From positions 620,001-684,000 of the forward strand of contig JBLDXI010000043.1 in the NCBI GenBank assembly GCA_047495785.1: a stretch of DNA of 64,000 nucleotides, read 5' to 3'. Positions within the stretch are counted from its first letter, which is position 1. Each line of letters starts with the position of its first letter. Below the pieces are notes generated by a model. The model saw only the letters and a list, made by a program, of their open reading frames with translations, was not told the DNA's origin and made no database searches. Made by a program: the position numbers and the translations under genes. This document shows, piece after piece, positions 1,949 through 22,879 of the stretch. The DNA comes from Lepidodermella squamata (Eukaryota; Animalia; Gastrotricha).

Positions 1949-3814
1949 CTCAGTTCAGATGGCGGAAGCGTACGAACATGCAGCGTACAATGCTGATATT
2001 CCCGTGGTTCCTTTCGGCGATGGTCTCATTCCCGGTCATGTTCGTGTGGCAAATCGAGGCGCCGGACGCCGAGGAGAAGCGGCGCAACGTCGAAGTGTGC
2101 GAACCCGTCATGGACAACGTGTACATCATGCTGTCGGCCATGGTCTCGTTTTTCCTACCTCTCGCCACTACGATATCTTTCTACGTGCAAGTCGCCATGG
2201 CGATGCACCGGCGGCTCGAGAAGCTCAAGGACGAGCTGGGCGGCGCGTTGAGCTCGGCCGCCGACCACCTCATCGCGAACCAGATGCGAGGCGGCGTGAC
2301 GTCACACGTGCGCAAGGCCGCGACCGCGCTGGAGCAGCGGGCGACGTACCGCGCGCAGACGCAGGCGCACATCCGGCAGTTGCGGCAGCACCGCGCCCTG
2401 CTCAAGTCCATGGCCATCGTCGTGCTGTTCTACTGCGTGTGCTGGGCGCCGCTCTACACCACGCTGTTCGTGCAGGCCGTCTGCTCGTGCCCGCAGGCCG
2501 CCTGGGACTTTTGGCTGTCGCTATTCACGTGGCTCGGCTACGCCAACTCCGCCGTCAACCCAATCATTGTAAGTCCTCTCGGTTTTTTCGTAGTACATTC
2601 CTTTCATCTATTGATGCGCAGCCGCTCACAGTGAATGAACGACCAATGAAAGAACGCTAATTGCTTCTATTTATTAGCATTCAGATAGCTGTTAGATACG
2701 ACGTTTTTTACCGAAATAAGGTGTAAGCCGCTTGAAGACTGGCCTAAAAATCTTAAAAAGGCATATCCCTTCGCGCAGCAATGCAGGAAATGCGGAGGAA
2801 ATACATATAAATTCTTATGTATAAAATGGATAATAGATATCCTGGAAAGGAAGCTTGAGCGAAGAGGAAATGCCGGAATTAGTGAATCCTCAATCAAATC
2901 CGAACTAATTTCTCAAGATGAGCATCAGTTTTGCAATATCAAGGCTATTCGAGTGTAGTTCGTAGGTGCTGCTTCCATGACCAGTCCACAGAGCGGCTGT
3001 TCTGCTGAGCTCACAATGAGTATCGATTTCACAAATCAGTAATCAGTGATTTTTTCCGGGCGCAGTGCGCAGTAGCAATCCGGAGAAATTGCACATACAT
3101 ACTTGAGCCAGTGAGAAAAAAGTCGGAACCTCGAAAAATCTGTGAGTTATGGTGTTAAATTCAGAAGCAATAGGAAAATGTTAATAGTTTCCTCAGACCG
3201 AAATAGCACAGCTTTGGATGTTCAAACCTAAATTATTCTCAAATTCCGTTGACTAATCAGTTTTATTTTGTATTTTTGCGCAGTATTTTTGTACACTGTA
3301 CGAATTCCGGCTGTTATCGGCGACGCTCGTCAAGCTGCTGGCCAAGTACGCGACGGATTTGCCGATAATCGGCTTCAACAAACTGCGGTACATGCGCTAC
3401 GCAACGTGCGCTGGTGCTCGCGCCACTTCGACGCAGAACAACGTCGGCTCGTGTCGATCGAGCATCGGCGGCCTCAGTTCGACGGTTGGCGACCCGCCGT
3501 GGCGCGCGCCGGGTCAAGGCCCGGGTCGTGTTGTAGCGAACCCGCTCTCCCCGTCACGGCTCAACAGGTGCGTGTCAATGCCGAGTCCTCAAATGCCGGC
3601 AACGTTCATCGACTACGTCATTGGCCCGCCGCCAATCGCGTGCCAACGATCGTCGACTACGAACAACACGGAGCTGGCGATAACAATGACTGTGATGTGT
3701 TCACGGTCTGCGGACTCGCTGGCTCATGCGCACCACGCCGGCAGCAATTTGTTCCGCTACTACGACGAGTTCGGGCGGCCAGTCAATGCGAGCTCGCGCG
3801 AGGCCACCTTCTGA
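1949..3814 (+). CDS. Class A (rhodopsin-like) GPCR-1, 5'-partial (TM4-TM7 plus C-tail)
   Basis: Exons 1949-2568 and 3284-3814; motifs W(4.50)..SFP, ECL2 Cys (VCEP), SFFLP, CWAP, GYANSAVNPII|Y. TM1-3 exon lies outside the window. Clear paralogue of GPCR-2. Confidence 0.85.
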
Positions 3815-4546
3815 TGATTTTATCACGTGATCATTGTATTATTATCATTATTACCACAACTGAAACTGAAAGAATAAAATTGCAACAGAGATACAATTTA
3901 TGGCAAACAGAGTGTTGTTTTTGTTTCAACGGAGTGTGACAGCCGGCGAGTGAGTGCAAGGCAGCGTTTTTTCGCGGTTTGAAACCGATATTCTACTGCG
4001 TTTGTTACTAATAACGACGACGACGCCGGCAATGCGCGCCCGTGGGAAATCGCCAAATGCGTCAAAAACAGCGTCATTCGATTACGCGCGCGTAATTACG
4101 CCCCACTGTTGTAGTTATTATTAGCCGACATTATATCGGCATGTGCCACTCACTCGCTCACTCACTGGCCGCCGCGTCTTCCGAAAGCCTTTTTCAGGCT
4201 CGTCATCTTCATCGAAAGATCGCCCGCATTTTTTCCTGTACCTGGCTTCGCGTTTTTCCGAAAAACGGGCCAAAAAACTAATGACTGCTCCCACTAATTC
4301 AATTTTCCTCAAGTCATGAGCGATGGCGGGATTATGTACACGCAGTGCCATTTGTCAGAAAAAACAACGATTTGATGTCTTAAGCCTACCAACGGGAATC
4401 ACATTCGGATTTCTAGCTACTGCCCCAATTTTTTCGACTACGGTTATAAATGCAATTTTTCATTTCCTGTAACAGAATGGCATATGAATTTCAGAAGACC
4501 CTAATTTTGTTGCTCGAATTGTAGGATCGTTTTGTTGATTATTGTA

Positions 4547-7467
4547 ATGATCATTTATTGCGCGCCCGTCATTTCCTACCTCGCCTTTTTTATGCATTCC
4601 GTTGGTTATGTAAAATCAGCATCTCTCAATGCCGACAACCCATCGATTGGTCCATTTTCCGAACTCGCGGAGACATGGCCAGGGGCTGCTAGCAACGAAA
4701 CGGGGACCAATTCAACATCGACTACAACACCGTCAGTGACTCGTAAGTCGACGAAATCCGCGTCGAGACGAACTCGTCGCACTACCTCGACTACCACTGA
4801 ATCAATCGACGCAGATCTCGATGAGGACGACGAGCCGTTGGGCAAACCGACGACTACCATACCGCCTACGACGTCACGCTGGTTGATCGGGGTAATCGGC
4901 GACAGTCAGGCGTTTTTACAAGCGCTAAAAACATCGCCGAAACCGGTGTACGACATCTCGCTAACTCCGTCGCCAGACTATCACACAGTTGCAGCATCGC
5001 TACAGCTGCAGCACGCCGCAATTTCGACAATTCTTATCGGCCTCGTCGCCTACATCGCCATAGTCAACTTTGTAGCGGTAGTCACCCTGCTATACGGGGT
5101 CCTGTCGCCGTCAGCCTCTTTGACAGTGCGAATGGTGTGTTTAAGAAAAAAGCCTGTCAGAGTCGCGTTTCAACCGCCCAGTGCCGCGACAGCGCCCGTA
5201 GCAGCCGGAGTCAATATTGCAGCCGAGCCTAGCCCAGCCCGTTCCGCCAGTACAGCGACTTCATCCGGCGCAGCTTCGTCCGGCCGCCGCACTGCCGTAG
5301 TCACTGGGGTTGACATCCCGGAAGAAGCTCTCACCTTTGACTCATCGGCCTTTCCTTACCTTCTATCGTTGGCTTTCTCTGACCTTTTGATCGGCTGCTT
5401 CATAGCGCCGTTGCAGCTGGACATCTATCTGAACAACGTGTGGCGCTTCTCCACTGACCTGTGCGATTTCTGGCTTGCTCTCGACATCTTCTTCTCGACC
5501 TCATCAACTCTACACACGGCAGCTATTGCAGTCGATCGATGGTGGACCATTACGCGATATCAATGTAAGCATTTAAGAGAGTTGACATTTCCTGAAACTT
5601 GGGAGCTTTTTCAGCTTTCGTCGAAACGCAGCAGACACCTCAGATCAGCCTCCAGAAGACTATGCTCATCTTCATTTGGATGCTGGCTGCCCTGGTCAGC
5701 TTCCCTGTGATTTACTTGTGGCAGATCGAGACTCCAGGGCAGGAGAGTCGGAAGCGCAATCCTGACGTAAGCCTTTTCCTTAGTTGGATTTCTCGGATAA
5801 CTTTGCCTGATATCGTTGTTTTAGCAATGTGAACCGGTTGCTGATGACACTGTGAGTTCTTTGACTTCTCCAATTTTTCCGTAACATTCAAATCTTCGAC
5901 GCAGTACATTCTGTTATCAACACTTGTGTCTTTCTGCCTGCCGCTCACCCTTACAATCGTGTTCTACGTGCAAACGGCCCTGCGAATCAAAAAGCAATAT
6001 TCTGTCGCTAAAATGTGCGTCCGTCAGATGGCGGGTCCGCTCAGCGAAGCCCTCCGCTCGTTCGCCGACACTGGCGACGATGGGGATAGCGAATTCGAGA
6101 GGAAGACTCGCATGATGATTCGCCGCCGGGCCGAAGCATTGCGCCTGGTGGAGAAGCACATGCAGATGCTGAATCATCACCGAGCGATGCTCAGGGCGAT
6201 GACTATGATTGTCATTGTCTACTGCCTGTGTTGGACGCCGCTGTACACGACGCTGTTCGTGAAGGCCATCTGCGACTGCATCATCAGCAACAAGGCTCAG
6301 CACACTTGGGGCCAACTTGTCACCATGTTCTCATGGCTGGGCTACGCAAATAGCGGGTAAGTCATAGATTCCAAGTACGCACTGACTTGTAAGTAACTCT
6401 TTTACCTCAGTATCAATCCCTTGATCTACTTTGCGGCTCTGGAAGAGTTCCGCACCCTCGCCCTCGCGCTCCTGTGGATCATCGTCGACCAAATAGCAAA
6501 ATTCTTCTCCTGTTGTTTCGATTGCTTCAGAAATTACATCGTAGCGGTGTGTTGCTGCTGTTGCCGGCCAGCTGTCGATTGGTAATCTATTATCTCATCT
6601 GATCATCTGAGACCTTATTCTTGCCTTATTTTCAGGGTCGCCAGGCGACGATCTTCGACAGTGAACAGCCAGAAGAGTGCGAGTGAGACGGCGAGCGCGA
6701 TGCTGGACAATATTTCAGCTCTTATGGCTCAGAGCGACTTAGTTCACCGAAATCAACCGATTCGTTTGCGGAAATCTGTTAGCAGCACCAACAACTTGGC
6801 GAAAGAAATCGAGCCAGTTGTTGCTAACAATTTGCCGCCGCCAGACTACACGATACCGAGGGTTGCGAGTAAACAACCAGTAGCCTTGCAGGACGAAGAA
6901 GCGGACGAGACTGAAACAAGGTCGACTGGGCCAGATAGCATTGGCCCTGGTAGCCAGAATGCCATGAATTCAAATGTTCAGCCGCCTTACTACTACGAGA
7001 ATGCGCCAACGTCAATGCCGTCATCTCTCGGCCCAATTCTCAGCCGGCCCCCTCATTGGGGCTTCGTGCATCCGTGGACGGTTTCAAGGTCACATCACGA
7101 GAATTTGAACAGATTCGCATCGCGATCGGGCGACTATGAAGACAGCAGTTTCCAGCGAGTCCCATTCAACGAGCCGCCGTTGAGGGCGATGCCCGTGCCG
7201 CTGCCTGCGCCGTCGTACCAGCAGTACATGAACGCGTACCAGAGACAGGATTCACTGTGGCGGAAAGTGCAGCGGCATCACCTGGTTGCCGGGGCGCTGA
7301 ACCAGAACTACGTGTCTAACCCGAATCTCGTGTCTGTTGGCACGAATACCGATGACTTGAGGGCGACGCTGGTGCGGGCGCCGATGACACCACGGTCATA
7401 CCATGGTGGTATGGCGGACAGTTGGGGCAGGCCGGTCAATTCACGCTCTCACGAAGCCGATGTATGA
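4547..7467 (+). CDS. Class A GPCR-2, aminergic-receptor-like (Asp3.32)
   Basis: Exons 4547-5564, 5615-5766, 5825-5851, 5905-6356, 6411-6581, 6636-7467 join in frame via GT-AG introns of 50-58 nt; motifs LAFSD, CDFWLALDIFFST, DRW, CWTP, NPLIY; hydrophobic leader and Ser/Thr-rich N-terminus. Start codon uncertain. Confidence 0.88.
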
Positions 7468-7572
7468 GACGAGGATTCCAGTCTTTTGATGAGAGAAAAA
7501 AGCCGTGATTCATAAATAGATAATTTATTTATAATCGTAAAAATGCAATAAAAAAATAGAAAATCGTAGTCT

Positions 7573-10103
7573 TCACAGTTTGTTGTGGGCTAGGGCGACG
7601 TGTTTCGCGCATTTCGTGGCGGTGGTGAAGGCGCGTGAGCACACGCCGCAGACGAAAGGAGCCGACGACGCTGCTGAAGGTGCGACAGCATCGTACGGTT
7701 TCATGTCGCCAGCGTGGCTGCGGCGCATGTGCTCGAGGAGGACGGCTCGCAGGCGGAACCGGCTTTGCTTGTTGCTGCGGCGGAACCCGGGCGGCGGGCA
7801 GAACGGGCAGCAGTACATGGGCGGAGTGGCTGAGGCCTTGGGACGGTTCTTCCTCATCAGCAACTCATCGGCAACTCTTGCTCGCCTTTTCTCGTCGGCG
7901 TAGTACCTGTTTCCGAGGTCTGCTTGCAGCGTACTGTCGCCTTCATCAAAGTACGACGAATCAGCAGCAGCAGCAGCTGTAGAATCGAGCGTCGAATCGC
8001 CGTCGACGTAGCTGCTGCTGCTATCTTCGAGCAGTGATTGCGTCGTCGAATCGCCATGACGGTGGTTTCTTATTCTCTGTCGTTGTCTGTCGATGGCCGT
8101 TTTCTGCTTGCGGTCTCGCTCATTTGTTTCCTCGTTGTAACCTTGATGCTGTGATTGTTCGTCTTCGCCTTCGCCTTGGTCGTGGGCTCGTTTGCGCCGT
8201 TGCCTGAGCACGTGCAGCATCTGGTCGCGGCTGACGAGCGACGTGACGCCGGCTTGCAGCGCGTGCAACTGCTGCGCCACGTGCGTGCCTACGCGGTTCA
8301 CCTGATCAGACAGCTCCTGTAAACCAGTCAAACAAGCATGAAAAACGGCAGTGTTACACGGTTAGAGAAAAGCCAGAATTGGTGCCATGAACATGGTGCC
8401 ATGAGGAAATATTCGAAAAATCATTGCAATTTTGTTTGTTGCCTTCATAACATTTATAAACTTATAACTTTATAGTTATAACTGGCTTAGAACTTATAGT
8501 TATAGTTTATTAACTTATAAACTTATAAACTTTATAAAAAATTTATAAACTTGAACTTCGAACTCATGAAGAAATTAAATTATTACTGGATGTGTTCAAT
8601 AAGGCATGTGCGGAACTAGGTTTGAAAATCAGCATTAGTAAAACCCAATACATGGTGATCGGGGATGATAGAAACTATCAACTTGAACTAGACGGCAAAC
8701 TATTGGAAAAAGTCACATCTTTCAAATATTTAGGAAGCATCATTACTTCCGATGGGAAAATGGACGAGGAGGTCAAGGCACGCATAGCGAAAGCTGGCGG
8801 CTGCTTTGGTGCCCTCAATAAACTCAAGTGCAATAGGAAACACGTGAGCTTAGCTACGCAATTGAAAGTCCTTAAATGTGTTGTAATTCCTACCTCCTAC
8901 CGTCACCTATGCCTGCGAAACCTGGAACTTGACCACCCAACAAGAGCAAAGGCTAAATGTAATTTTTATGCGCTGGCTTAGAACAATTATGGGTCTGTTT
9001 AGAACGGACTATATTCCTAATGTAGATATTAGACTGATATGCGACGTAATGGAATTGAGTAAATTGATTGAAAAATTTCGTCTGAAATATTTTGGCCATA
9101 TAATTCGGCAGGATGAATAAGACCCTGAAAGTCTCACTATTATTATGTACTACTGGAAAGCGGTCGACCCGAGTTGGTACCTGCCTCGCGGCAGGCCACC
9201 AACCCGATGGTCTGACAGCCTCCGAAGAAGCCTACTAAAAATTGGAATTTTTTATATACATGAAAAACCTAATGAACCCAAAAAACGAGGGCGACCCCGT
9301 AAATCAACCTTATTGATGCGACGCACTGAAATTCACTAAATTCCCGATTTAGAATTGGCGGAAATAACAGCTAGAGACCGGGAAGAATGGCAGCTACTAT
9401 GTAACAGTATAGAAAATTATGAATTCATGGGAAAAAGCAGATTGTTCGCGACTGTTCCTGAAGCTGGTCTCTCGTCTTCAGCCGTCCCCTAAACCCTCAC
9501 GGGTAAGGCTTGTACATATTGCCACCACATTTTTTACAGCCGAGGAGGACGAAAAATAAAACATTTTCATTTGTTCATTTCATTTGTTCATTGCAATTTT
9601 TGAAATTTCTCCTTTCGTAACGAATTCAATTACCTAGTAAAAACTAGCCAATACTTGGTTAGAATCAAGAGCACAGCTTAAAGCGTTATGCCAAAGAAAT
9701 CAACACCAGTTTAGTAAAACAAGTAAAAACGAACCTGGAAAGCGGACTGCAGCTGGTAGCGAAACAGTTGCTCGTCGTGGAAAATGCGCTGCTGCTGCTG
9801 CTGCTGGTGCTGGGTTTCAAAGTCATCGCTGCGGCTGCCAAACGGCTGAAAATCATGCGGTGCGCCTTCGATGCCGCTCATATCATGCAACTGCTGCTGC
9901 TGCTGCTGCTGTTGATCATGGTCGTTGACATTTATCGTCGGCAGTTGGTGCTGTGAGTAGCAACTCAACGGCGGCGGTTGCATGAAGTCGAATCGCAGTT
10001 TCTTAGCCGCCGGCACGAACGACATGTTGCTTTGGCAGGAGAAGCCCGTGCTGTCATCGTCAGCAGCCATCAAGTTCTTGCGAGGCGTAGACGTGTTAAA
10101 CAT
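7573..10103 (-). CDS. C2H2 zinc-finger protein (Gln-rich N-terminus, coiled coil, two C-terminal fingers)
   Basis: Exons 10103-9735 and 8316-7573 join in phase 0 (SAFQ|ELSD); fingers CPFC...HMRRSH and CGVCSRAFTTATKCAKHVALAH. Confidence 0.72.
8446..8552. repeat. AT-rich degenerate tandem repeat (TTATAAC/TTATAG units) at the 5' edge of the LINE fragment
   Basis: Repeated ttataa(a)c / ttatag units are directly visible. Confidence 0.7.
8560..9492 (+). mobile_element. 5'-truncated, decayed RTE-clade non-LTR retrotransposon, antisense in the zinc-finger gene intron
   Basis: RT C-terminal and post-RT motifs GLKISISKTQYM, FKYLGSII, EVKARIAKA, YACETW, RLKYFGHIIR, PRGRPPTRWSD, ARDREEW spread over frameshifted or stopped ORFs (8592-8981, 8929-9120, 9145-9339). 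Confidence 0.9.
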
Positions 10104-10609
10104 TTTCACTAAAATCGCCACCTACCGAAATAAAACTTGCATTTTCGAAAATTGCATAAAAATAAGAAACCATATCGTCGGTGGAATCGTGAAAAGTGCC
10201 GTCTTTTAGGTATTTCCTGAATACTTCGCATACAGTTAAATTTTCCGGAATTTCGGCTGAATTTCTGTCAAAGAGACAAGCCTATTTGTATAACGAAACG
10301 CAGATGTTACAGGGCTACAGTAATTAGTCAACTACCAGCCTCATAAAATTCGAAGCAGTAGTACCTACTAGGTACATTGCTCTTATTCAATTGCAAAAGC
10401 TACTGTTATTCAGAGCGGAATTGAATGATATCAAATTTTGGCAAAATGCAATTTTATGCGAAATATTTAGCAAATACCAAAAGAGATAGGTAGCACTTGC
10501 CATTTGTTTCACCGACAACATAGACAACATTATGAAAGGCGAAAACAACTACAGCAGTTTGATGATGATGATGATGAAAATAGTAGAACAAGAAAAATAA
10601 CAATACAAG

Positions 10610-12283
10610 TTAGTAGTAGGCACTGCTGCCACTGGAGAAACCAGCGTGGAATGAGCGGCCGACGTGGGCGGAGCGGAAGTGGCGGTCTCGCTTGGCCGCA
10701 CTCGCCAGCACGGCGTCGCACAGGCCGCACGCCACGCCACCGTCGACAGTAGCAGTCGTAGCAGCAGCCGATGCTCCCACCGCCTTGAAATCAACGACGG
10801 CCGACTGCGACTTTCGAACACTGGTGTTGTTTCTGCCATCTGCAGGCATCTTCGCATCAGCAGCATTACTCCTAGGCGCACCACTTCCTGATGCTGCTGA
10901 GGATGATGACGCCGAGGATGAAGATATCGACTCATCGACAGCGATCAGCGAACTGCTCAAATCATGATGCGAGTCTTCTGCTTCTGCTTCTGCTTCATCT
11001 GCGACGAACGTGTAACAGCAACTAGCTGTAACTGATGACGGAGGCGGCGGAGGCGGTAAGCAACTGCTGCTGCTGTTGTTGTTGTTGTTGTTGTGCTTCA
11101 ACTCGTTTTCGCCAACAATCACGACGCACGTCTCACCGCAGACATCATCGTCATCATCGGCAGTTGCATCGGCAGATGATAACAACATCACGAGTTGTTC
11201 AGCAGGCGATGAACAAGGTGATGTCGATGAGATGCAGATGGGCGAGGAGCCGAAACACGCCGCCAACTTCGAGCCTTGTCGGTCGAGTTGGTCCTCAACT
11301 TCACCGGCGGTCAAGTTACGGCGATCATCGGCATCACATGATGAACCTATGGAAAGCAATACAAGGTCTTCATCATCTATTTTAGTTTGGCTACAACAAA
11401 ATCCTGAAATAAGGCGATTTTTTAATTCATTTTTTAATAAACAGGGCACTGTTATTTGCTGCGATTGGTTTGAATTTATTCAAATGGCTTTCAAATCGAA
11501 TTTCTTCTTCGCGTCAAAATGATAATAATTATTACCCAATCCCGACGCAGATTTTCTTAAATAAATGCGAGGAAATTGTCATTTTTCGAAAAAATCTGCT
11601 GGTGGCTGATGGCTGGTATATAGTCGAACAAATCGATATTAAAGCTATTATAATATGCCTGCTGGATCTTCGTCAAACTTTAGAGCAGGCGGGCGCCATA
11701 GACTATCCATATTTTGTATTCAATTCAAATTCAAATTTTTCGATATTCAAAAACACGAGCGCGATTGAAACTTGTGAATTAAATCAGCAACTTGTAGGAT
11801 CTATGCGCTCGAGTCCCTAGAATGCGTCCATTTTCCGACTAGATTCCTTGTTATTTGCTACAAAAAAATCCATTTTCATTTTGTGTTGCTTCGTGAAAGG
11901 GCAATTTAAATCTTCAAGGAGCTACAATTGCATCAACAAAAATTGAGAACCTGGATTGTGTTGTTCCTCCCGATCTACTTGTTCGTGTTGCAGCAGCGGC
12001 GGGCAGCTGCTGGCTGACGTTGCATTCATTGCATCATCAACATCATCATCATCTGCTCTTCTGCTGGTGTCTTGTTCTTCCTGCCTCTTGTTCTTGTTGT
12101 GTCTTGTTAAATCTTGGCACCACTGCTTCAGTAGTTGCATCAACTCTTCGCTGCAGTCATCGTCGATGCTGAGGCCTTTCGCGGCGGTGATTTGCGACAT
12201 GAGCGCTTTCAGGCGCTTGCCAGTCGTCGTCGTCGTCGTCGACGGCTCGGCAACCGGCAGCAGCAAAAAGTCAATTTCATCAT

Positions 12284-12316
<33 letters not shown>

Positions 12317-12557
12317 CATCCTGTCTTCTTCGTCGTCGTACTCTTCCTAGGTTTTTCTCCTGCACGGTATTCACCGCATGTCTACGCTGATGTGTTTTCG
12401 CTTTCGCAGTTCGCAGCATGCGTTCGAGCTGAGCGTTGCGGCGCTCGAGCACGGCGACGCGGGCGCGCAGCAGACGCGCGTCCGCCTGCAACCGCACCAC
12501 GGCCTCGTCGAAGGCACGCGACGACGACGACGACATGGGCTCATGCTCATCGTCCAT
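10610..12557 (-). CDS. Coiled-coil, low-complexity protein with a single C-terminal C2H2 finger
   Basis: Exons 12557-11951 and 11403-10610 join in phase 1 (NP-G|FCCSQ); N-terminal heptad helix; CGLCDAVLASAAKRDRHFRSAH. Confidence 0.68.
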
Positions 12558-13100
12558 CGCTCTTTCTTCTCAAAGTAGTCTTGTATCAATCAATCACTGC
12601 AAAATGCAACATCGTCATCATTATAACCGTTGTCTTTTTCTTTACTCGTCAACTGTTTTTTTTTGTATCATGATCATGATCGTATTTTTGTTATTATCAT
12701 TGGTAGAAATTGTCAAAAGATTTTAGAAAAATACTCACACCATAACAACTGCAATTACATAAATAAGAATACCAATAGACAGAGAGATAGAGACGGGTCA
12801 AAAACCACAAATAAATAACATATATTATATTTGTTAACAAAATAATGATAACGAGACTCAATCAAACACCGAGCGAGAATATTATTGTTAGATCTAGAAA
12901 ATGAGGGCGGCAATGAAAAATAACACATCATCATTTTAGTACTTGATCAGATGACGATTTTATGATAGCAGAAAACAGAACATCGACTACCACATACAGA
13001 CAGACTAGATGCATTTCAATCAACAAACACATTTGTTCTTCATTTGTTGGATAGAGTAGAAATCATGAGATATACATTGTAGATATTAAAAACAATGCGA

Positions 13101-15488: not shown

Positions 15489-16409
15489 ATGGAGGGATCT
15501 GTCACGATCAAGCAGGGTCAAGTAGCCGTTGCAGATGGCACAAAACTTTACTATGAAATCAGATATTCGCCAGATCCTCCTGCCAACTCAGCTGAAGCCG
15601 AAAGAATAATTATGATTATGGGCGCTTTTGCCACCTTGAAGCATTACGATGAAACTGCTGATATGTTGGTGAAACACTTTGCGAAGACGAAAACTCCTGT
15701 CGAGGTGTTGACATTCGACAATCGTGGTATTGGTAAATCAACACCAGCCCCCAAGGTCAAACAATCGACCAGCATGTTGGCTGGCGATACTCTAAATTTG
15801 ATTAACCAAGTTTGGGGTGAAAACAGCCATGTGCATCTTTATGGGGCCAGTTTAGGCGGCATGGTCGCCCTTGAGTTGGCGACTACGCTAGTTCCAGCAA
15901 AACGGTTAAAATCTCTCTACCTTGCAGTCACGTCACGAGGCTCAGCTGTTCGACCCCTTGGTATCCTTGGTACTGGAGTTTGGTCTGCCTTGATGCCAGC
16001 ATTCATTAAATCAGACCGGGAAAGAATGGTGCGTGATGTTTTGCTACCGGCGTCATTTTCGGCGGAAACTTTGCAGACTCAGGGCGAAAAGTTTGCTCAA
16101 ATGTGGCTGGCTGATTACGACGCATGGTGGGCGTTTGGAGATCTACAAGCTTGCGCTTGCCAATCGCCAGCTGCCGCTACTCACTACGTCTCTGATGAAA
16201 GATTGCGTGTAATTCGAGAAAGTGGAATTGCTATAACTGTGCACATTGCAACGAAGGACAAGTTGATACCGCGGAAGAAGCAGGAGGAACTCGCGAAATT
16301 GTTGAACGCAAAAACAGCAGTTTTCAACCACGGACACATGGGCGATGAAGATGCTAAACTTCAAGTTTTCCAGGCTGTTGTAACTCATTTGGAGACCGCA
16401 ATGACATGA
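15489..16409 (+). CDS. Alpha/beta-hydrolase (Abhydrolase_1 type), intronless
   Basis: 306 aa ORF; FDNRGIGKS, nucleophile elbow GASLGG, acid in KDKLIP, His in GHMG; AATAAA at about 16521. Confidence 0.9.
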   Translation: MEGSVTIKQGQVAVADGTKLYYEIRYSPDPPANSAEAERIIMIMGAFATLKHYDETADMLVKHFAKTKTPVEVLTFDNRGIGKSTPAPKVKQSTSMLAGDTLNLINQVWGENSHVHLYGASLGGMVALELATTLVPAKRLKSLYLAVTSRGSAVRPLGILGTGVWSALMPAFIKSDRERMVRDVLLPASFSAETLQTQGEKFAQMWLADYDAWWAFGDLQACACQSPAAATHYVSDERLRVIRESGIAITVHIATKDKLIPRKKQEELAKLLNAKTAVFNHGHMGDEDAKLQVFQAVVTHLETAMT

Positions 16410-17762: not shown

Positions 17763-18735
17763 TACGAAATTTTGAAATCATACGCGATGTCAGCTATTAT
17801 GGACAGAAAAGCCTCTCAATTATTTTATCGGCTACTTTAACCTAATCTACGTGGCATAAGTTATCGCGCCTAGAGCGCCGAGAGGCGGATGGTTGTACAA
17901 ATAAAATCTCGATATGCCAATGTGATGAAGCTGACACTTAACATAGAATCTGAAAAGCCAACCCGATAAAATGCGAAAACATTTTCCAAAGGTTTTGGAG
18001 TTTCCTCCTGGGATTGTAGATATTTGACACGGCGCGTTGTTTTGTACCAAATAGTCGGATCCTGGAAGAGATCGCTTTTCTTCAACTTTTTCTCTACTTT
18101 GTTCTTCGATCCGTGATAAATTTCAGCTTAAATTCCACCAATTTCATTTGGAAAAAGACGACTTTCTCCAAATATTCTATCAATCCACTGGCCACTGGTC
18201 CATTTTCGCGAAGGAGGTACAGCTCTGGAATCTTGAAGCACATAAGGAGTATTGTTTAGCCTCGGCATGGCTCCGGTTTGGAACCTACGTAACGAAATAA
18301 CAAAGCTGATAATTTTATTTTGATCGCATCACGTTGTGTTGAGACGTTGAGATTGGAGAGAAGAGAAGATGAGAGAAGAGAGAGATCTTGTGTGAAATCG
18401 ACTGATTGTAGATAATGAATGCGCGAAATTGTGCAACATTATATGGGACCAGGGAAAGCAGCCAAGCTCCACTTTGCATGTGAAACTTGGCCGAGCGTCC
18501 CTCTTTCCTCAGAATAGTAAAAGTAACTACAATAACATGATAGTTATCCTTTCTCTTATTATTTGTACAATATCGTAAAAAGTAGCAAGTTGTTGAGATT
18601 GGAAAAACTACGACAAGAGACATGGCTTGTATATTTTGTATGTATAAATTTGCGTTTCAGATACACAGCGTATTAGACTAGAGATGAATAATACCTATAT
18701 ATAATAGCATGGCTAACAAATTGCGCTAAGACTGT

Positions 18736-18969
18736 TCATTTTTTGCCTAACAGGAACGGATTGTAGCCGTTGTAGTTGTACGGCTGGTTCGAGTAGGTGC
18801 GCGACGCCGAGCAGTCGTCGAGGTACGGCTTCCACGCGTCGCACTTCAACGCCGGGCCGAAGAATTTGTTCTGCCAGTGGAAAATGATGCCTGATTCAGC
18901 GATCGTGAATATGAGGTTGATAATGACCAGCACGAGGATCACAACCAGCAGAGCCGTGTTTTCAGCCAT
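18736..18969 (-). CDS. Single-pass microprotein family member A (77 aa)
   Basis: MAENTALLVVILVLVIINLIFTIAESGIIFHWQNKFFGPALKC...NPFLLGKK; shares the N-x13-W motif with three neighbours. Confidence 0.8.
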   Translation of the reverse strand: MAENTALLVVILVLVIINLIFTIAESGIIFHWQNKFFGPALKCDAWKPYLDDCSASRTYSNQPYNYNGYNPFLLGKK

Positions 18970-19732
18970 TGATTTCGGTTTGTTTTGATTTTATTCGACT
19001 GCTATAATTAGCAAAAAACTACTGAGCTAGAAAATACGATAAGGTTATAAAACGATGACAATGAAATACTATTAAATTTGGGCGGGATGTTGCGATTTTT
19101 TTTTATCAGGGATAAGCAATCGGGTGGTAATGAAAACCATGCCTCTGCTAGTGGGTTCGCCCTCACCGGCTACCTCGTGAGGTCAGTATTTAAGGCGAGA
19201 AGAATAAAACTAATGCTGCATTTCGTGACTTGCGCTGATGGATTCGAGGCCGTTGCTAATCGTTGCTAAGCGCGTTGATATAAACGAAGGAACTATTGCA
19301 GCTTCCGGGCCTTTGTGCGGCCTTGGCCTGCTCGCATCGGGACACAGCAGTCGCCGGCCAGTTCCAGGATGGAGTCATGCACGAGGCATAGCAACCCAGC
19401 CTTGCTTTCATTTTTATTACGACTCATTTCCAATGGCAATAAGCCGTTGTTTGTAGTTTCGTAATGAAATCAACTAGTATATCCGTGATAGTGCCTTTTG
19501 ACAGCCAGCGCACCGGCATAGTTTCAAGAAAGTATAAATTGAAAAAGGTAGCAAAATAACTTGACAACGACATGCCAAGTACAGTGCAAAGAAATTTCGA
19601 AAACATTCAGTTCGCAGCCACACCCGAAAGCACGTAAAGGAGTAGAGAGTGAAAAAATAGTAAAAATCACCGAGATCAAAGTTTTGATTGAATTAATCAT
19701 TAATGATTGAAGTTGTTCAGAAACAGTTTTTC

Positions 19733-19973
19733 TTAATAAAGTCTGCCATAAATTATTCGATTGCAAGTTTGAACTGCTCGAATAGCTTGGCAATTGAGGA
19801 TCGGCCCAAAGTAGACATCTTGCCAGTAGAATATAATTGCTGCAGCGCAGATTGTCAATATCAAGTTTAGGAGAAGGAGTACAAACATTGAAATCACCAC
19901 AGCTTTCATCAGTTCTAAAGGAAAACGTTGGGCAATCCGAAATTTTCTAATCAGTTAAAGTTGGCTTACCCAT
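19733..19973 (-). CDS. Single-pass microprotein family member B (61 aa; not in ORF track)
   Basis: Exon ATGG 19973-19970, 55-nt GTAAG..AG intron, exon 19914-19733: MELMKAVVISMFVLLLLNLILTICAAAIIFYWQDVYFGPILNCQAIRAVQTCNRIIYGRLY. Confidence 0.8.
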
Positions 19974-20182
19974 GTTAGATTTTCAGGCTCGAATTTCCCA
20001 AGTTATACTGCGAAAGACGTGTTTGTTTATTTTAAATAAAACCTAAAATTCAGAAAAAAAAAGAAATGTTCATATATGAACGCGTTAACTTGAGCTATAT
20101 TATAAAATCAAAGCGTTGACAGCAAACGATAAAAAGTCAGCAAAAGCGTGCATACGATCGCTTGAAAAACAGTTCATTGCAA

Positions 20183-20402
20183 TCATCCAACGAGTAGTGG
20201 AGCGTAGTAAGGAGCTCCGTCGTAAATTCGTTGCCAGTGGAAAATGATGGCGCCCGAAGCGATGATAATGCACAGATTGAGCGCCAACAAGGCGATGATG
20301 ATGTACAAGAACAGCTTGATAGTTTTCACGATTTCAACTGGAAAACAGGCAGAAAACAGAGACTAATTTATGTCATATCAGTCATTTTTAATATTTACCC
20401 AT
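20183..20402 (-). CDS. Single-pass microprotein family member C (52 aa; not in ORF track)
   Basis: Exon ATGG 20402-20399, 61-nt GTAAA..CAG intron, exon 20337-20183: MVEIVKTIKLFLYIIIALLALNLCIIIASGAIIFHWQRIYDGAPYYAPLLVG. Confidence 0.8.
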
Positions 20403-20600
20403 TTTGCCGTAAATTTATAGTTAACAAATCCCTAAAACAACAGAAAAAGTCAGGTGTAAGCAAAAAAAAAATTAACTGTGACATATCATTCAAAGCAATA
20501 TATCAACGTAAAAGATGTTTTATAACGAAAAGGCAAAGCGCTGAAGCTGCATAACATTGCATTTTTTTCGGAACAGGATCACGGCAGCAAATTTCGCGCA

Positions 20601-20837
20601 TCAACCGCTACCAGTTGGATATGCAGCGTTCGAAACCGCGTCAATGAAAGGGCGGTAATACGTGTGATGCCAGTTGAAAACGATGACTGATGCGCAGATC
20701 GTGAAGCAAACGTTGAGGAAAACCAGCACAATGGCGACGATGAAGAAAGTCTTGACTTCCTTGAGCATATCTGTTAACACACATTTATAACAATCGATAT
20801 ACCATTTGGAAATTGCTGCAGCTATATTGTTACCCAT
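20601..20837 (-). CDS. Single-pass microprotein family member D (57 aa spliced)
   Basis: Exon ATGG 20837-20834, 63-nt GTAAC..CAG intron, exon 20770-20601: MDMLKEVKTFFIVAIVLVFLNVCFTICASVIVFNWHHTYYRPFIDAVSNAAYPTGSG. Confidence 0.8.
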   Translation of the reverse strand: MGNNIAAAISKWYIDCYKCVLTDMLKEVKTFFIVAIVLVFLNVCFTICASVIVFNWHHTYYRPFIDAVSNAAYPTGSG

Positions 20838-21880
20838 TTTTCCGAGGTGTCAGTTTGATCGAGCTGCAGCGTTTATTATTATTGTTCTTATTATTAAATG
20901 AAGAAATAACGCTAGAATGTGTGTTTTTCGTCGGGCGATGTGTCAAGTCTTGTTGCTAGCTGGACACCGCCTATTAAATAAGACTGCGGTCGCGACTTCA
21001 GTACTAGCGTTCAGTGAGGGCAAACTCTGAGCCGTAAAAAACGAGAAAGCACTCAGTCACCTCGGCAGGCTCGCGTAGTCCGAGTGTTTGGCATGGGGCT
21101 GCTGGCACGTTGCTTCACGAAGGGAGTATTTACCAGTACTGCAGTTACACCGATGTGGCAAAAGTGACTCTCTTTTTTTCGCTCAATTGCGTTTTTTTAT
21201 TCCTGGCACGCTCTTGTGACAGCAGAAAATCAACTTCACCAATCCGGTTGTTTTCCACATTCCGTTTTTGTATTTCCAGAATTACAGTTAGCAAACTCCG
21301 GAGTGCAACAGCAACAATGCATGTAAAAGCTTTTGGCACGAAAGGCTTGTGCGTAAAAAAATTACCGGCCTCTTTTTGACGCAGCAGTAGTAGGCATTCA
21401 TCACGTCGCCGTAACCCTTGGCACACACAACGTGTGCGCACACACGTTAACTAGACTGCATGTAGTAGTAGTAATGGAAGCATCTGGAAAATGTTAACAA
21501 AGTAAAGCAACATAGTTTTGTCGTTGCTTTCAGCAGTTAGTTTCCTGAGCAAATACAGTCTTGTTCTACTACATCAGCATACCATTTTTTATTCGTTTGA
21601 TCACGTGTCCCAACAGGTAGGTAGGTATTCAAGACGTCATCATCAAGCCTGAACCAGTCAATTTACGCGACCTGTTGTATCTCACCTGAATAGCGACGTG
21701 TGTTTTGTACGGCAGGTAAAGAAGAAGAGGACGAACTCATTCTCTACCCATCAACCTACGTCAGCTCTTTTGAGATACACCGCCGCCGTTCGTTTTATTT
21801 ACTCACCTTAGTTTTTTCAGCTGTGCATTTTCACTCAAAGCATTGGATTTATTGCCCTCTGTACGATATAGGTTTTACAT

Positions 21881-22879
21881 ATGAAAATGTCATCGCCCAC
21901 GGATCGCCAGATGACGCTATCTGAGAAACTCGCTGATCAACAGCTGCAGTCCATGATTGCAACTACCCTGTCATCTGGTAAAGTCATGCCTGCTTACCCA
22001 GTGCCAACCGTTATTGCGGCTGGATGCAATGAGAAAATGATCAGCGACCAGAAAACTCTGATTCCTGTCCAACTCGCTCCACCTACCAAGCAATGTATTC
22101 GTCGCCGGAAGGCTGCTTCATGCTGCGCAACTTTCCTCTTCGCCGTAATGACCCTGCTTTCGATGGGCCTCATCGTCTACCTGGCGGTTCACGCCCATCG
22201 CCAGTGGGTTGCTTACTGCCACGGAATGCAGGCCCACCAGCAAGCTATGATGGCTGGTGCGAATTATAACCAACCGAGGTTTGCACACCGTCGCCATCAC
22301 GACGACTCTTCCTCAGCTTCTGATGAAATGAATGATGGCAACAATGGGCTTCTGTTCGAAAAACTTATGCGGCCGAAAATTGAGATTTCATTCACTTCGA
22401 TCACTTTCGTGTCGAGCGACAACAAGCAGCAGCTGCCCGTACAACAGCAACCAACTGTTATCACTGGCAGTGCGGATGCGGATAATAGCAAATCGATCGA
22501 AGACTTGAGCCGTGACCCCATGTTGAATGAATTTTTGTCGATGCTGCTTCAGGACAACGATAACAATGAACTGGTGAAGCCAACGGTGCCAACTGTGGCA
22601 AGTGGTGTTACGACCCAGGCCCCGACCCCGGCGGACCAGGATGCTGACGAGCAGCTTCAACAAGCCATGGAACAATTTGGCAACATGTTTGCCTCGATGA
22701 TTCCCCAGCAGATGCCTTCGGTCCAGCTTCCGCCAATCCAGATGCCTACATCGAGCCAAACCGAAGATTTCTTCCGCAACATTTTCGGATTCGGCCAACC
22801 GGCACAGCAGCAGCAACCTCAGCCGCAACAGGAACAGCCACGCCCGGTGCACCTGCTTGGCGCTAGCGGCCACGATTAA
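21881..22879 (+). CDS. Orphan type II single-pass membrane protein with Gln/Pro/Met-rich C-terminal region
   Basis: 332 aa ORF; RRRK followed by TM FLFAVMTLLSMGLIVYLAV; AATAAA at 22971. Confidence 0.72.
   Translation: MKMSSPTDRQMTLSEKLADQQLQSMIATTLSSGKVMPAYPVPTVIAAGCNEKMISDQKTLIPVQLAPPTKQCIRRRKAASCCATFLFAVMTLLSMGLIVYLAVHAHRQWVAYCHGMQAHQQAMMAGANYNQPRFAHRRHHDDSSSASDEMNDGNNGLLFEKLMRPKIEISFTSITFVSSDNKQQLPVQQQPTVITGSADADNSKSIEDLSRDPMLNEFLSMLLQDNDNNELVKPTVPTVASGVTTQAPTPADQDADEQLQQAMEQFGNMFASMIPQQMPSVQLPPIQMPTSSQTEDFFRNIFGFGQPAQQQQPQPQQEQPRPVHLLGASGHD

Follow-up and report, generated by a model that had tools for sequence, protein, structure and literature searches.

The question raised by this locus is whether four very short open reading frames (ORFs) lying in a row are genes and, if they are, what kind of protein they encode. 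The window, by which we mean the whole analysed stretch of 64,000 nucleotides (nt) from the gastrotrich Lepidodermella squamata, contains four minus-strand ORFs at 18736–20837, referred to as genes A (77 amino acids, aa), B (61 aa), C (52 aa) and D (57 aa); all genes are numbered in window coordinates. An earlier note on the sequence had proposed four same-strand ORFs of 77, 61, 52 and 57 aa. All four were found where it had placed them, on the minus strand, and their lengths are identical to those of the spliced and unspliced gene models given below. We show here that A–D are real, transcribed genes under purifying selection with a common gene structure. In our judgement they are probably tandem paralogues that encode uncleaved single-pass membrane anchors, in which a conserved module at the end of the helix would dock on a partner protein or on sister subunits.

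A profile built solely from relatives in other organisms (the foreign-only profile) was scored against the 1912 six-frame segments of the window. It picked exactly A–D, with expect values (E) of 2.7e-20, 2.2e-18, 3e-14 and 3.6e-11, while the next segment had an E of 0.63; this search revealed no fifth family member in the window. The four products align without gaps over their core, as the earlier note had claimed, with six positions invariant among them (L14, N18, I23, I28, F30 and W32). The note's further claim of an old family under purifying selection, with strongly diverged DNA and a retained protein motif, is borne out by the substitutions. Nucleotide identity over the core is 46–65% among the window paralogues, with proportions of differing synonymous sites (pS) of 0.48–0.97 versus 0.30–0.41 for nonsynonymous sites (pN). 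The ratio of nonsynonymous to synonymous substitution rates (dN/dS) between paralogues is 0.06–0.5, synonymous sites in the window being near saturation. Between members b or c and member d of a metagenome contig, L002, that carries relatives of A–D, the ratio is 0.06. Variants between diverged copies of the locus, found in contigs of two public runs, point the same way: 12 of the 13 variants in the frames of A, B and C are synonymous and one changes Ile to Met. Gene A has one (18754, synonymous), B has nine (eight synonymous and the Ile-to-Met change) and C has three, all synonymous. In the genomic run X2 two sequence forms occur at similar depth (~51 versus 64) at 19772–20249 and 21298–21581, several percent and small indels apart, and in one form 84 nt at 19989–20074 are replaced by 80 other letters. 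The two forms are diverged haplotypes or copies, which are typical of bdelloid-like genomes.

Transcription, which the earlier note had named as a check, was found in run X1. SMART cDNA adaptor sequence is present at loose ends in this run, and we therefore treat it as cDNA. It was the assembled contigs of the runs, and not raw reads, that were compared with the window. Run X1 covers A and its 3′ untranslated region (UTR) (18368–18972), B and its 3′ UTR (19424–19915), C (20116–20338) and part of D at a word depth of 36–235, with zero depth in two flanks, 17962–18323 and 19048–19409. One cDNA contig stops matching the window at 19915, and its 16 further letters do not fit the gene B intron, indicating that the gene B acceptor is used. 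Taken together, the foreign-only profile, the conserved gene structure described next, the synonymous variants, the dN/dS between paralogues and the cDNA coverage with silent flanks establish A–D as genes.

Genes B, C and D share a start that is easily overlooked: a phase-1 intron follows directly after ATG+G, so that the start codon lies in a coding exon of four bases. The same arrangement is found on L002, a 4.6 kb contig with four family members (a–d) in tandem. In b, c and d, ATGG is followed by GTACGT or GTAAGT, an intron of 61–75 nt and an in-frame acceptor. Their second exons contain no ATG ahead of the helix, and the start codon can consequently come only from the mini-exon. The intron is thus present in three of four genes in the window and in three of four on L002, always in frame. 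It is absent from A, from the relatives on contigs L001 and L004 and apparently from L002 a, the products of which still start ATG-G.. or ATG-A... Read from the sequences, six in-frame ATGG|GT cases in two organisms are hard to explain other than as a conserved gene structure. A ~56-nt intron is present in a neighbouring gene, and the size of the mini-introns (55–63 nt) is therefore normal for this genome. The intron of gene D is the least certain of the three in the window, since its unspliced read-through is also open (78-aa ORF).

What do these genes encode? Together with 11 relatives (cluster representatives and their contigs) A–D make up a set of 15 members, and all 15 contain a hydrophobic helix with one central polar residue, followed by G-I-[IV]-[FY]-x-W-[QH]. 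The N-terminus ahead of the helix is 4–17 residues long, with a net charge of zero or below in 13 of 15 members. The polar residue lies mid-helix, 14 residues before the conserved Trp, and is Asn in 11 members, Gln in three and Glu in one; in each of A–D the Asn comes after exactly 12 hydrophobic residues. All 15 members have a small-x-small motif, [ACS]-x-[GAS], immediately ahead of the conserved block. This best-conserved block, G-I-[IV]-[FY]-x-W-[QH]-[DN]-[KR]-[FY]-x-G-P-x-L-x-C, begins at the helix end and extends into the juxtamembrane segment. In gene A the core reads NLIFTIAESGIIFHWQNKFFGPALKC, with the second Cys 10 residues further on and a C-terminus of ...YNPFLLGKK. The juxtamembrane part, [DN][KR][FY]-x-G-P-x-L-x-C with a second Cys downstream, is found in A and B and not in C (RIYDGA) or D (HTYYRP). 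The product of C has no Cys at all and ends in ...YAPLLVG; that of D has none after the helix and ends in ...AYPTGSG. C and D are therefore degenerate members. The number of Cys residues after the core is always even: two in 12 members, four in one and none in C and D. The conserved Trp is followed by 45, 29, 16 and 22 residues in A, B, C and D, respectively, and by 38–226 in the relatives, whose longer tails are rich in Asn, Trp and Thr or in Pro and Val. N-x-S/T sequons are depleted in the tails (6 observed versus 21.7 expected from shuffles).

Some features of the motif described in the earlier note need to be redrawn on this larger set. Of its invariant N-x13-W, the Asn is indeed invariant within the four window products, but it is Gln or Glu in some relatives, and Trp alone is invariant in every member. 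What the note described as aromatic-x-[GR] is in most members really the longer juxtamembrane segment given above, degenerate in C and D. The Cys pair noted in A and B is present and extends to nearly all relatives, the pair being lost in C and D. Hydropathy and structure prediction both support the single long hydrophobic helix. Mean Kyte-Doolittle hydropathy over 19 residues is 2.4–3.2 in the 15 members, the uncharged run is 24–28 residues in most of them, and the summed free energy of membrane insertion is −0.2 to −4.5 kcal/mol on a scale with values from the literature. The helix is thus of membrane-grade hydrophobicity. AlphaFold2, given A and the 15-row alignment, predicted one unbroken helix over residues 2–41, with block means of the predicted local distance difference test (pLDDT) of 90–98 over residues 1–30 and a disordered tail; the helix has no break at the putative cleavage motif. 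Column conservation is highest from 9 residues before the Trp to 1 residue after it, i.e. at the helix end and the juxtamembrane region, across the putative cleavage site.

A transmembrane (TM) stretch of full length and strength, acidic N-terminal regions, conservation across the hydrophobic segment and an unbroken predicted helix all argue for an anchor that is not cleaved. We infer that the helix stays uncleaved, and likewise its orientation in the membrane and the binding of a partner. Our proposal is that four separate, tandemly duplicated genes, of a family known from the window's organism and a few environmental or transcript contigs, would each produce a protein with a short acidic or neutral N-terminus, a helix of 25–27 residues with a central polar residue, the conserved block and a variable tail. 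The helix would remain as a membrane anchor, giving a single-pass membrane protein. The working module would be the conserved helix end together with the juxtamembrane and Cys segment, and the four window genes, with tails of 16–45 residues, would be minimal, tail-less versions. The function of the predicted products beyond anchoring, as we infer it, would be docking of this module onto sister subunits or a different membrane protein. In membranes, helices are classically driven to associate by a buried Asn, Gln or Glu, and for this reason docking on a partner or sister subunits is the most economical function. By analogy, the central polar residue, Asn in the window and Gln or Glu in some relatives, may drive helix association here as well; the replacements stay polar, so a role in hydrogen bonding could be retained.

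Two known kinds of protein resemble this layout. Uncleaved N-terminal signal-anchor proteins (type II/III) also have a short N-terminus, a helix of 20–27 residues, basic residues and a Gly/Pro hinge after the helix. The anchors of microsomal cytochromes P450, for instance, have a basic stretch and a PPGP hinge, comparable to W-Q-D-K-F-x-G-P. In those proteins, however, function resides in the catalytic domain and the anchor shows little conservation, whereas the present family conserves anchor and hinge, and the rest is variable or missing. MgrB-type small membrane regulators of bacteria (PF13998) are about 50 residues long with an N-terminal helix. MgrB carries two conserved Cys residues in a short tail outside the cytoplasm and acts by binding a larger membrane protein, PhoQ. 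Among the named feature clusters of the Atlas it ranks with those nearest to B, at a score of 0.70, below the tool's lead threshold. The likeness is in architecture only, MgrB belonging to another domain of life and showing no sequence match.

Several observations weigh against an uncleaved anchor or against the evidence assembled for it. The small-x-small motif before the conserved block could be a site for signal peptidase. The cues for topology conflict: acidic N-terminal flanks and a long helix favour N-out/C-in, while the even Cys count and the depletion of sequons favour the opposite, a luminal or extracellular C-terminus. Conservation along the helix increases towards its C-terminal end and has no 100-degree, one-face periodicity (p = 0.58), and no packing face is evident. 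The RNA status of run X1 is a guess by the tool, and in the comparison of contigs no splice junction is listed for the three mini-introns.

The coordinates of the four genes are collected in Table 1.

Table 1. Features of genes A–D in window coordinates
Feature	Position	Strand	Basis
Gene A, coding sequence, unspliced	18736..18969 including stop (coding 18739–18969; ATG at 18969)	-	ORF list; foreign-only profile E 2.7e-20; cDNA contig 18530–18972
Gene A, 3′ UTR, minimum extent	18368..18735	-	cDNA contigs 18368–18488 and 18530–18972; zero depth 17962–18323
Gene B, exon 1, coding part ATG+G	19970..19973	-	GTAAGC immediately after ATGG; spliced frame reads M-E-L-M-K
Gene B, intron, 55 nt, phase 1, GT..AG	19915..19969	-	Sequence reading; cDNA contig end at 19915
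Gene B, exon 2 including stop	19733..19914 (coding 19736–19914)	-	Foreign-only profile E 2.2e-18; cDNA contigs 19772–19915
Gene B, 3′ UTR	19424..19732	-	cDNA contig 19424–19775, then zero depth 19048–19409
Gene C, exon 1, coding part ATG+G	20399..20402	-	GTAAAT after ATGG; spliced frame M-V-E-I-V-K
Gene C, intron, 61 nt, phase 1, GT..ttttccAG	20338..20398	-	Sequence reading; cDNA contig ends at 20338
Gene C, exon 2 including stop	20183..20337 (coding 20186–20337)	-	Foreign-only profile E 3.6e-11; cDNA contigs 20116–20338
Gene D, exon 1, coding part ATG+G	20834..20837	-	GTAACA after ATGG; spliced frame M-D-M-L-K
Gene D, intron, 63 nt, phase 1, GT..ttaacAG	20771..20833	-	Sequence reading; variant 20775 inside intron
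Gene D, exon 2 including stop	20601..20770 (coding 20604–20770)	-	Foreign-only profile E 3e-14; cDNA depth 41 (20496–20676) and 5 (20677–20857)

We also asked how far the family extends. A profile of A–D, the search that the earlier note had proposed, was run against 1.84 billion cluster representatives and matched nine proteins at E <= 0.001. Eight of the nine are true relatives with the same core (E 2.3e-14 to 8e-5), and no relative has a match in Pfam or PDB. The ninth, P0006, was rejected as a false match, since the similarity covers only profile positions 26–48 and recurs in six repeated stretches of a repeat protein. All relatives come from ENA, JGI or Logan environmental or transcript assemblies. 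The contig of one relative carries a SOCS-box neighbour, which points to an animal as its source. No member comes from an annotated reference proteome, although bdelloid proteomes are among the searched collections. None of the four products themselves turned up in these collections, and the exhaustive search yielded foreign relatives only. A word-indexed protein search with A returned no match, not even A itself, and one with the 15-member alignment returned only four already-known proteins. A scan of JGI metagenome contigs with a 7-member alignment identified a single locus, namely the P0002 contig. Judging from public data, the family is rare.

Nor had the earlier note recognised the family, and a comparison with known families leaves that assessment in place. 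The best Pfam scores are 11–15 bits against cut-offs of 22–30, each to a different domain of unknown function (DUF), and none is near threshold. Among PDB chains the family profile has zero matches at E up to 10, and no named relative is present among the 1.84 billion representatives. Atlas feature searches with A, P0005 and B gave scores below 0.8 throughout, an Rfam search of the whole window found no family, and a literature search for rotifer microproteins returned nothing relevant. Judged by their sequences, A–D and their relatives are a new, undescribed family in the broad and already known class of small proteins with a single helix.

Two of the database entries for relatives differ from the genes that underlie them. 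P0004 (106 aa; L002 3728–4048) reads through a 75-nt intron after ATGG, and the spliced product would be 81 aa; prokaryote-style gene callers thus distort this family. P0001 (147 aa; L004 399–842) is a mis-call: its start is placed ahead of the probable ATG (477), and a TGA at 726 is passed over. The true product has no intron and measures about 83 aa. Further downstream, at about 985–1060, L004 contains a tRNA-like sequence. On L002 an element, GGCACGACGATA(TTTGTTTTCATG), occurs at 683–694, 2244–2255, 3275–3286 and 4075–4086, so that each of the four family genes has a copy 25–160 nt past its stop codon. The element is always on the plus strand, even beside the minus-strand family gene, and has no copy in the window. 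Between two family genes, at L002 3372–3515, there is a short tandem repeat of roughly GTTGGGTAC(A/C)GT(T/G)GTTGT(T/G)CCAAT. In a synteny comparison of the window with contigs L001–L005 the family members alone match.

Among the alternatives to a membrane anchor, the one that fares best is that A–D are precursors of secreted peptides with a long cleavable signal peptide, one disulfide loop and a C-terminal amide. The earlier note had not raised it; we consider it unlikely, though worth setting out in full. The signal would consist of an n-region, 12 hydrophobic residues, the Asn at the boundary of the h- and c-regions and ~8 residues ending in small-x-small, and the mature product would begin (G/A)-I-I-F-x-W-Q. 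The motif [ACS]-x-[GAS] in 15 of 15 members, the constant 12 residues before the Asn in A–D, the even Cys counts after the core and the depleted sequons all fit this model. So do the C-termini. A C-terminal G, GK or GKK is present in six of the 15 members (GKK in A; GK in P0005 and L002_a; G in C, D and P0003), compared with a chance expectation of about one of 15 (rough, ~0.08 per protein) that treats related, non-independent members as if they were independent; a terminal Y-x-P-x-x-x-G is common to A, C and D, while B ends in GRLY. In the Atlas, the named feature clusters closest to A are neuropeptide precursors, at scores of only 0.70–0.77, whereas those closest to B are small bacterial membrane proteins.

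The hydrophobic segment itself is less easily reconciled with secretion. A run of 24–28 residues with a hydropathy of 2.4–3.2 is of TM grade and longer than usual h-regions. In 13 of 15 members the n-region is acidic or neutral; in L004 it has 17 residues and a net charge of −2. AlphaFold predicts a continuous, high-confidence helix through the putative cleavage site. Signal peptides are normally poorly conserved. In hormone precursors conservation is expected in the mature peptide and not in the signal, but here its peak spans the putative cleavage site and the hydrophobic part. Amidated, disulfide-looped hormone precursors of the calcitonin/DH31 type do share with the family a hydrophobic N-terminus, a loop between two Cys residues and Gly or Gly-Lys(-Lys) at the C-terminus, the latter in A, C, D and three relatives. 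They differ in that the family's hydrophobic segment is of TM length and its best-conserved part, that its n-regions are acidic and that many relatives have low-complexity tails of 100–226 residues, which are unlike prohormones. No match to any neuropeptide Pfam family was found.

A different question is whether the genes are transcribed separately. B, C, D and perhaps A could be cistrons of one polycistronic transcript resolved by a spliced leader, an arrangement compatible with any reading of the proteins. Rotifers trans-splice a 23-nt leader (PMC3795323). An operon of this kind would entail GGCTTATTACAACTTACCAAGAG joined to acceptors ~30 nt upstream of each ATGG. AG acceptors do lie at about that distance, the genes are on the same strand with short spacers (201 nt from the stop of D to the ATG of C, and 212 nt from the stop of C to the ATG of B), and cDNA depth is continuous from C into the 3′ half of D. 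However, the contigs showed no leader sequence, the depth drops to 5.6 in the B–C interval and to zero in the A–B interval, and the transcript-like contigs of the relatives L003 and L005 do not begin with the published rotifer leader. In addition, a separate cap site, at about 21851 and right after the SMART adaptor, serves the neighbouring gene at 21881. An operon is, on balance, quite unlikely.

The earlier note had suggested regulin-like modulators of a pump or channel. By analogy with SERCA and sarcolipin or sarcolamban, the products would be modulators of a P-type ATPase, the helix lying in a groove of the pump with its Asn hydrogen-bonded to the pump. Regulins (phospholamban, sarcolipin, myoregulin, endoregulin, another-regulin, DWORF and insect sarcolamban) are likewise tens of residues long, with one helix, a polar residue (Asn34/Asn11) and aromatic residues beyond it, and they were long overlooked owing to their tiny ORFs (PMC8396278). 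The family has this small one-helix form, the conserved polar residue in the helix and an aromatic-rich segment after it; C and D, in which the helix is followed by just 16 and 22 residues, could enter the membrane in the manner of tail-anchored proteins. As a claim of membership, the suggestion did not survive. Regulins are tail-anchored, with a C-terminal helix and luminal tails of 0–14 residues, and sarcolipin has cytoplasmic residues 1–6, a helix at 7–26 with Asn11 and the tail RSYQY (PMC8396278). In the present family an N-terminal helix is followed by 16–226 residues, usually with a Cys pair, and A, B and every relative have 29–226. The polar residue is mid-helix and not near the cytoplasmic end, and the Asn, Gln or Glu cannot be aligned to regulin Asn34 or Asn11. 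There is no sequence similarity: Pfam models of sarcolipin and phospholamban gave no matches (E up to 10; E up to 1), nor did any PDB chain at E up to 10, although the SERCA-sarcolipin and SERCA-phospholamban complexes have been crystallised (PMC8396278) and would be expected among the chains searched. We therefore regard regulin-type modulators as very unlikely, although a regulin-like mode of action might still apply to the shortest members, C and D.

Finally, that A–D are chance ORFs or decayed pseudogenes in non-coding DNA, as might be supposed from their very short frames, the missing conventional in-exon ATG in two of them and a low expression (depth 36–235 versus 4,000–13,000 for a neighbouring gene), is excluded by profile E-values of 1e-11 to 1e-20 from foreign sequences alone, by 12 of 13 variants being synonymous, by an intron position kept across organisms and by cDNA coverage with silent flanks.

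Two neighbouring genes were examined. The divergent neighbour at 21881–22879 (plus strand) encodes a 332-aa single-pass, Gln-rich orphan, with a cDNA depth ~100 times that of the microprotein genes. The SMART adaptor joins 21851–21861 directly, placing the cap site ~30 nt before the ATG, and one allele is without 7 nt (21862–21868). A leader-like loose end at 21869 was rejected as a candidate, being genomic sequence from 21851–21861. The protein has no Pfam family and, by the foreign-only profile, is not a member of the microprotein family. The other neighbour is a single-exon alpha/beta hydrolase at 15489–16406 (plus strand), whose nearest named relatives are from bdelloid rotifers (Rotaria 56–57%, Adineta 50–53%, Didymodactylos 53%), with fungi next. 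In a maximum-likelihood tree it belongs to a well-supported clade (95/98) that contains all bdelloid sequences, where it branches next to Didymodactylos in a basal polytomy. From its sequence it looks like a bdelloid-type horizontally acquired gene. Taken by itself, this one gene would place the source of the window near the base of the bdelloids, as a probable rotifer outside the bdelloid genera sequenced so far; a dipteran origin, which composition had suggested, was rejected.

The start-codon mini-exon appears to be an unusual, conserved feature of the new family. Standard gene calling misses conserved microprotein genes of this kind, with a start codon in a 4-base coding exon, and environmental gene callers misread two relatives by reading through an intron or, in one case, a stop codon. 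With its core motif, gene structure and 15 members now defined, the family's function becomes testable in a cultivable micro-animal. We tentatively entertain the possibility that A–D are minimal, lineage-restricted TM microproteins whose conserved helix, with its buried Asn, Gln or Glu, would bring them together in hetero-oligomers or dock them on a pump, channel or receptor, an independently evolved counterpart of the regulins or of MgrB in which the tandem array would supply interchangeable subunits, or else that they are a new family of amidated, disulfide-looped peptides. If this is not so, what remains is an annotation fix and a caution on start-codon mini-exons. If the products are indeed membrane regulators or new peptide signals, they would represent a lineage-specific layer of membrane or endocrine biology.

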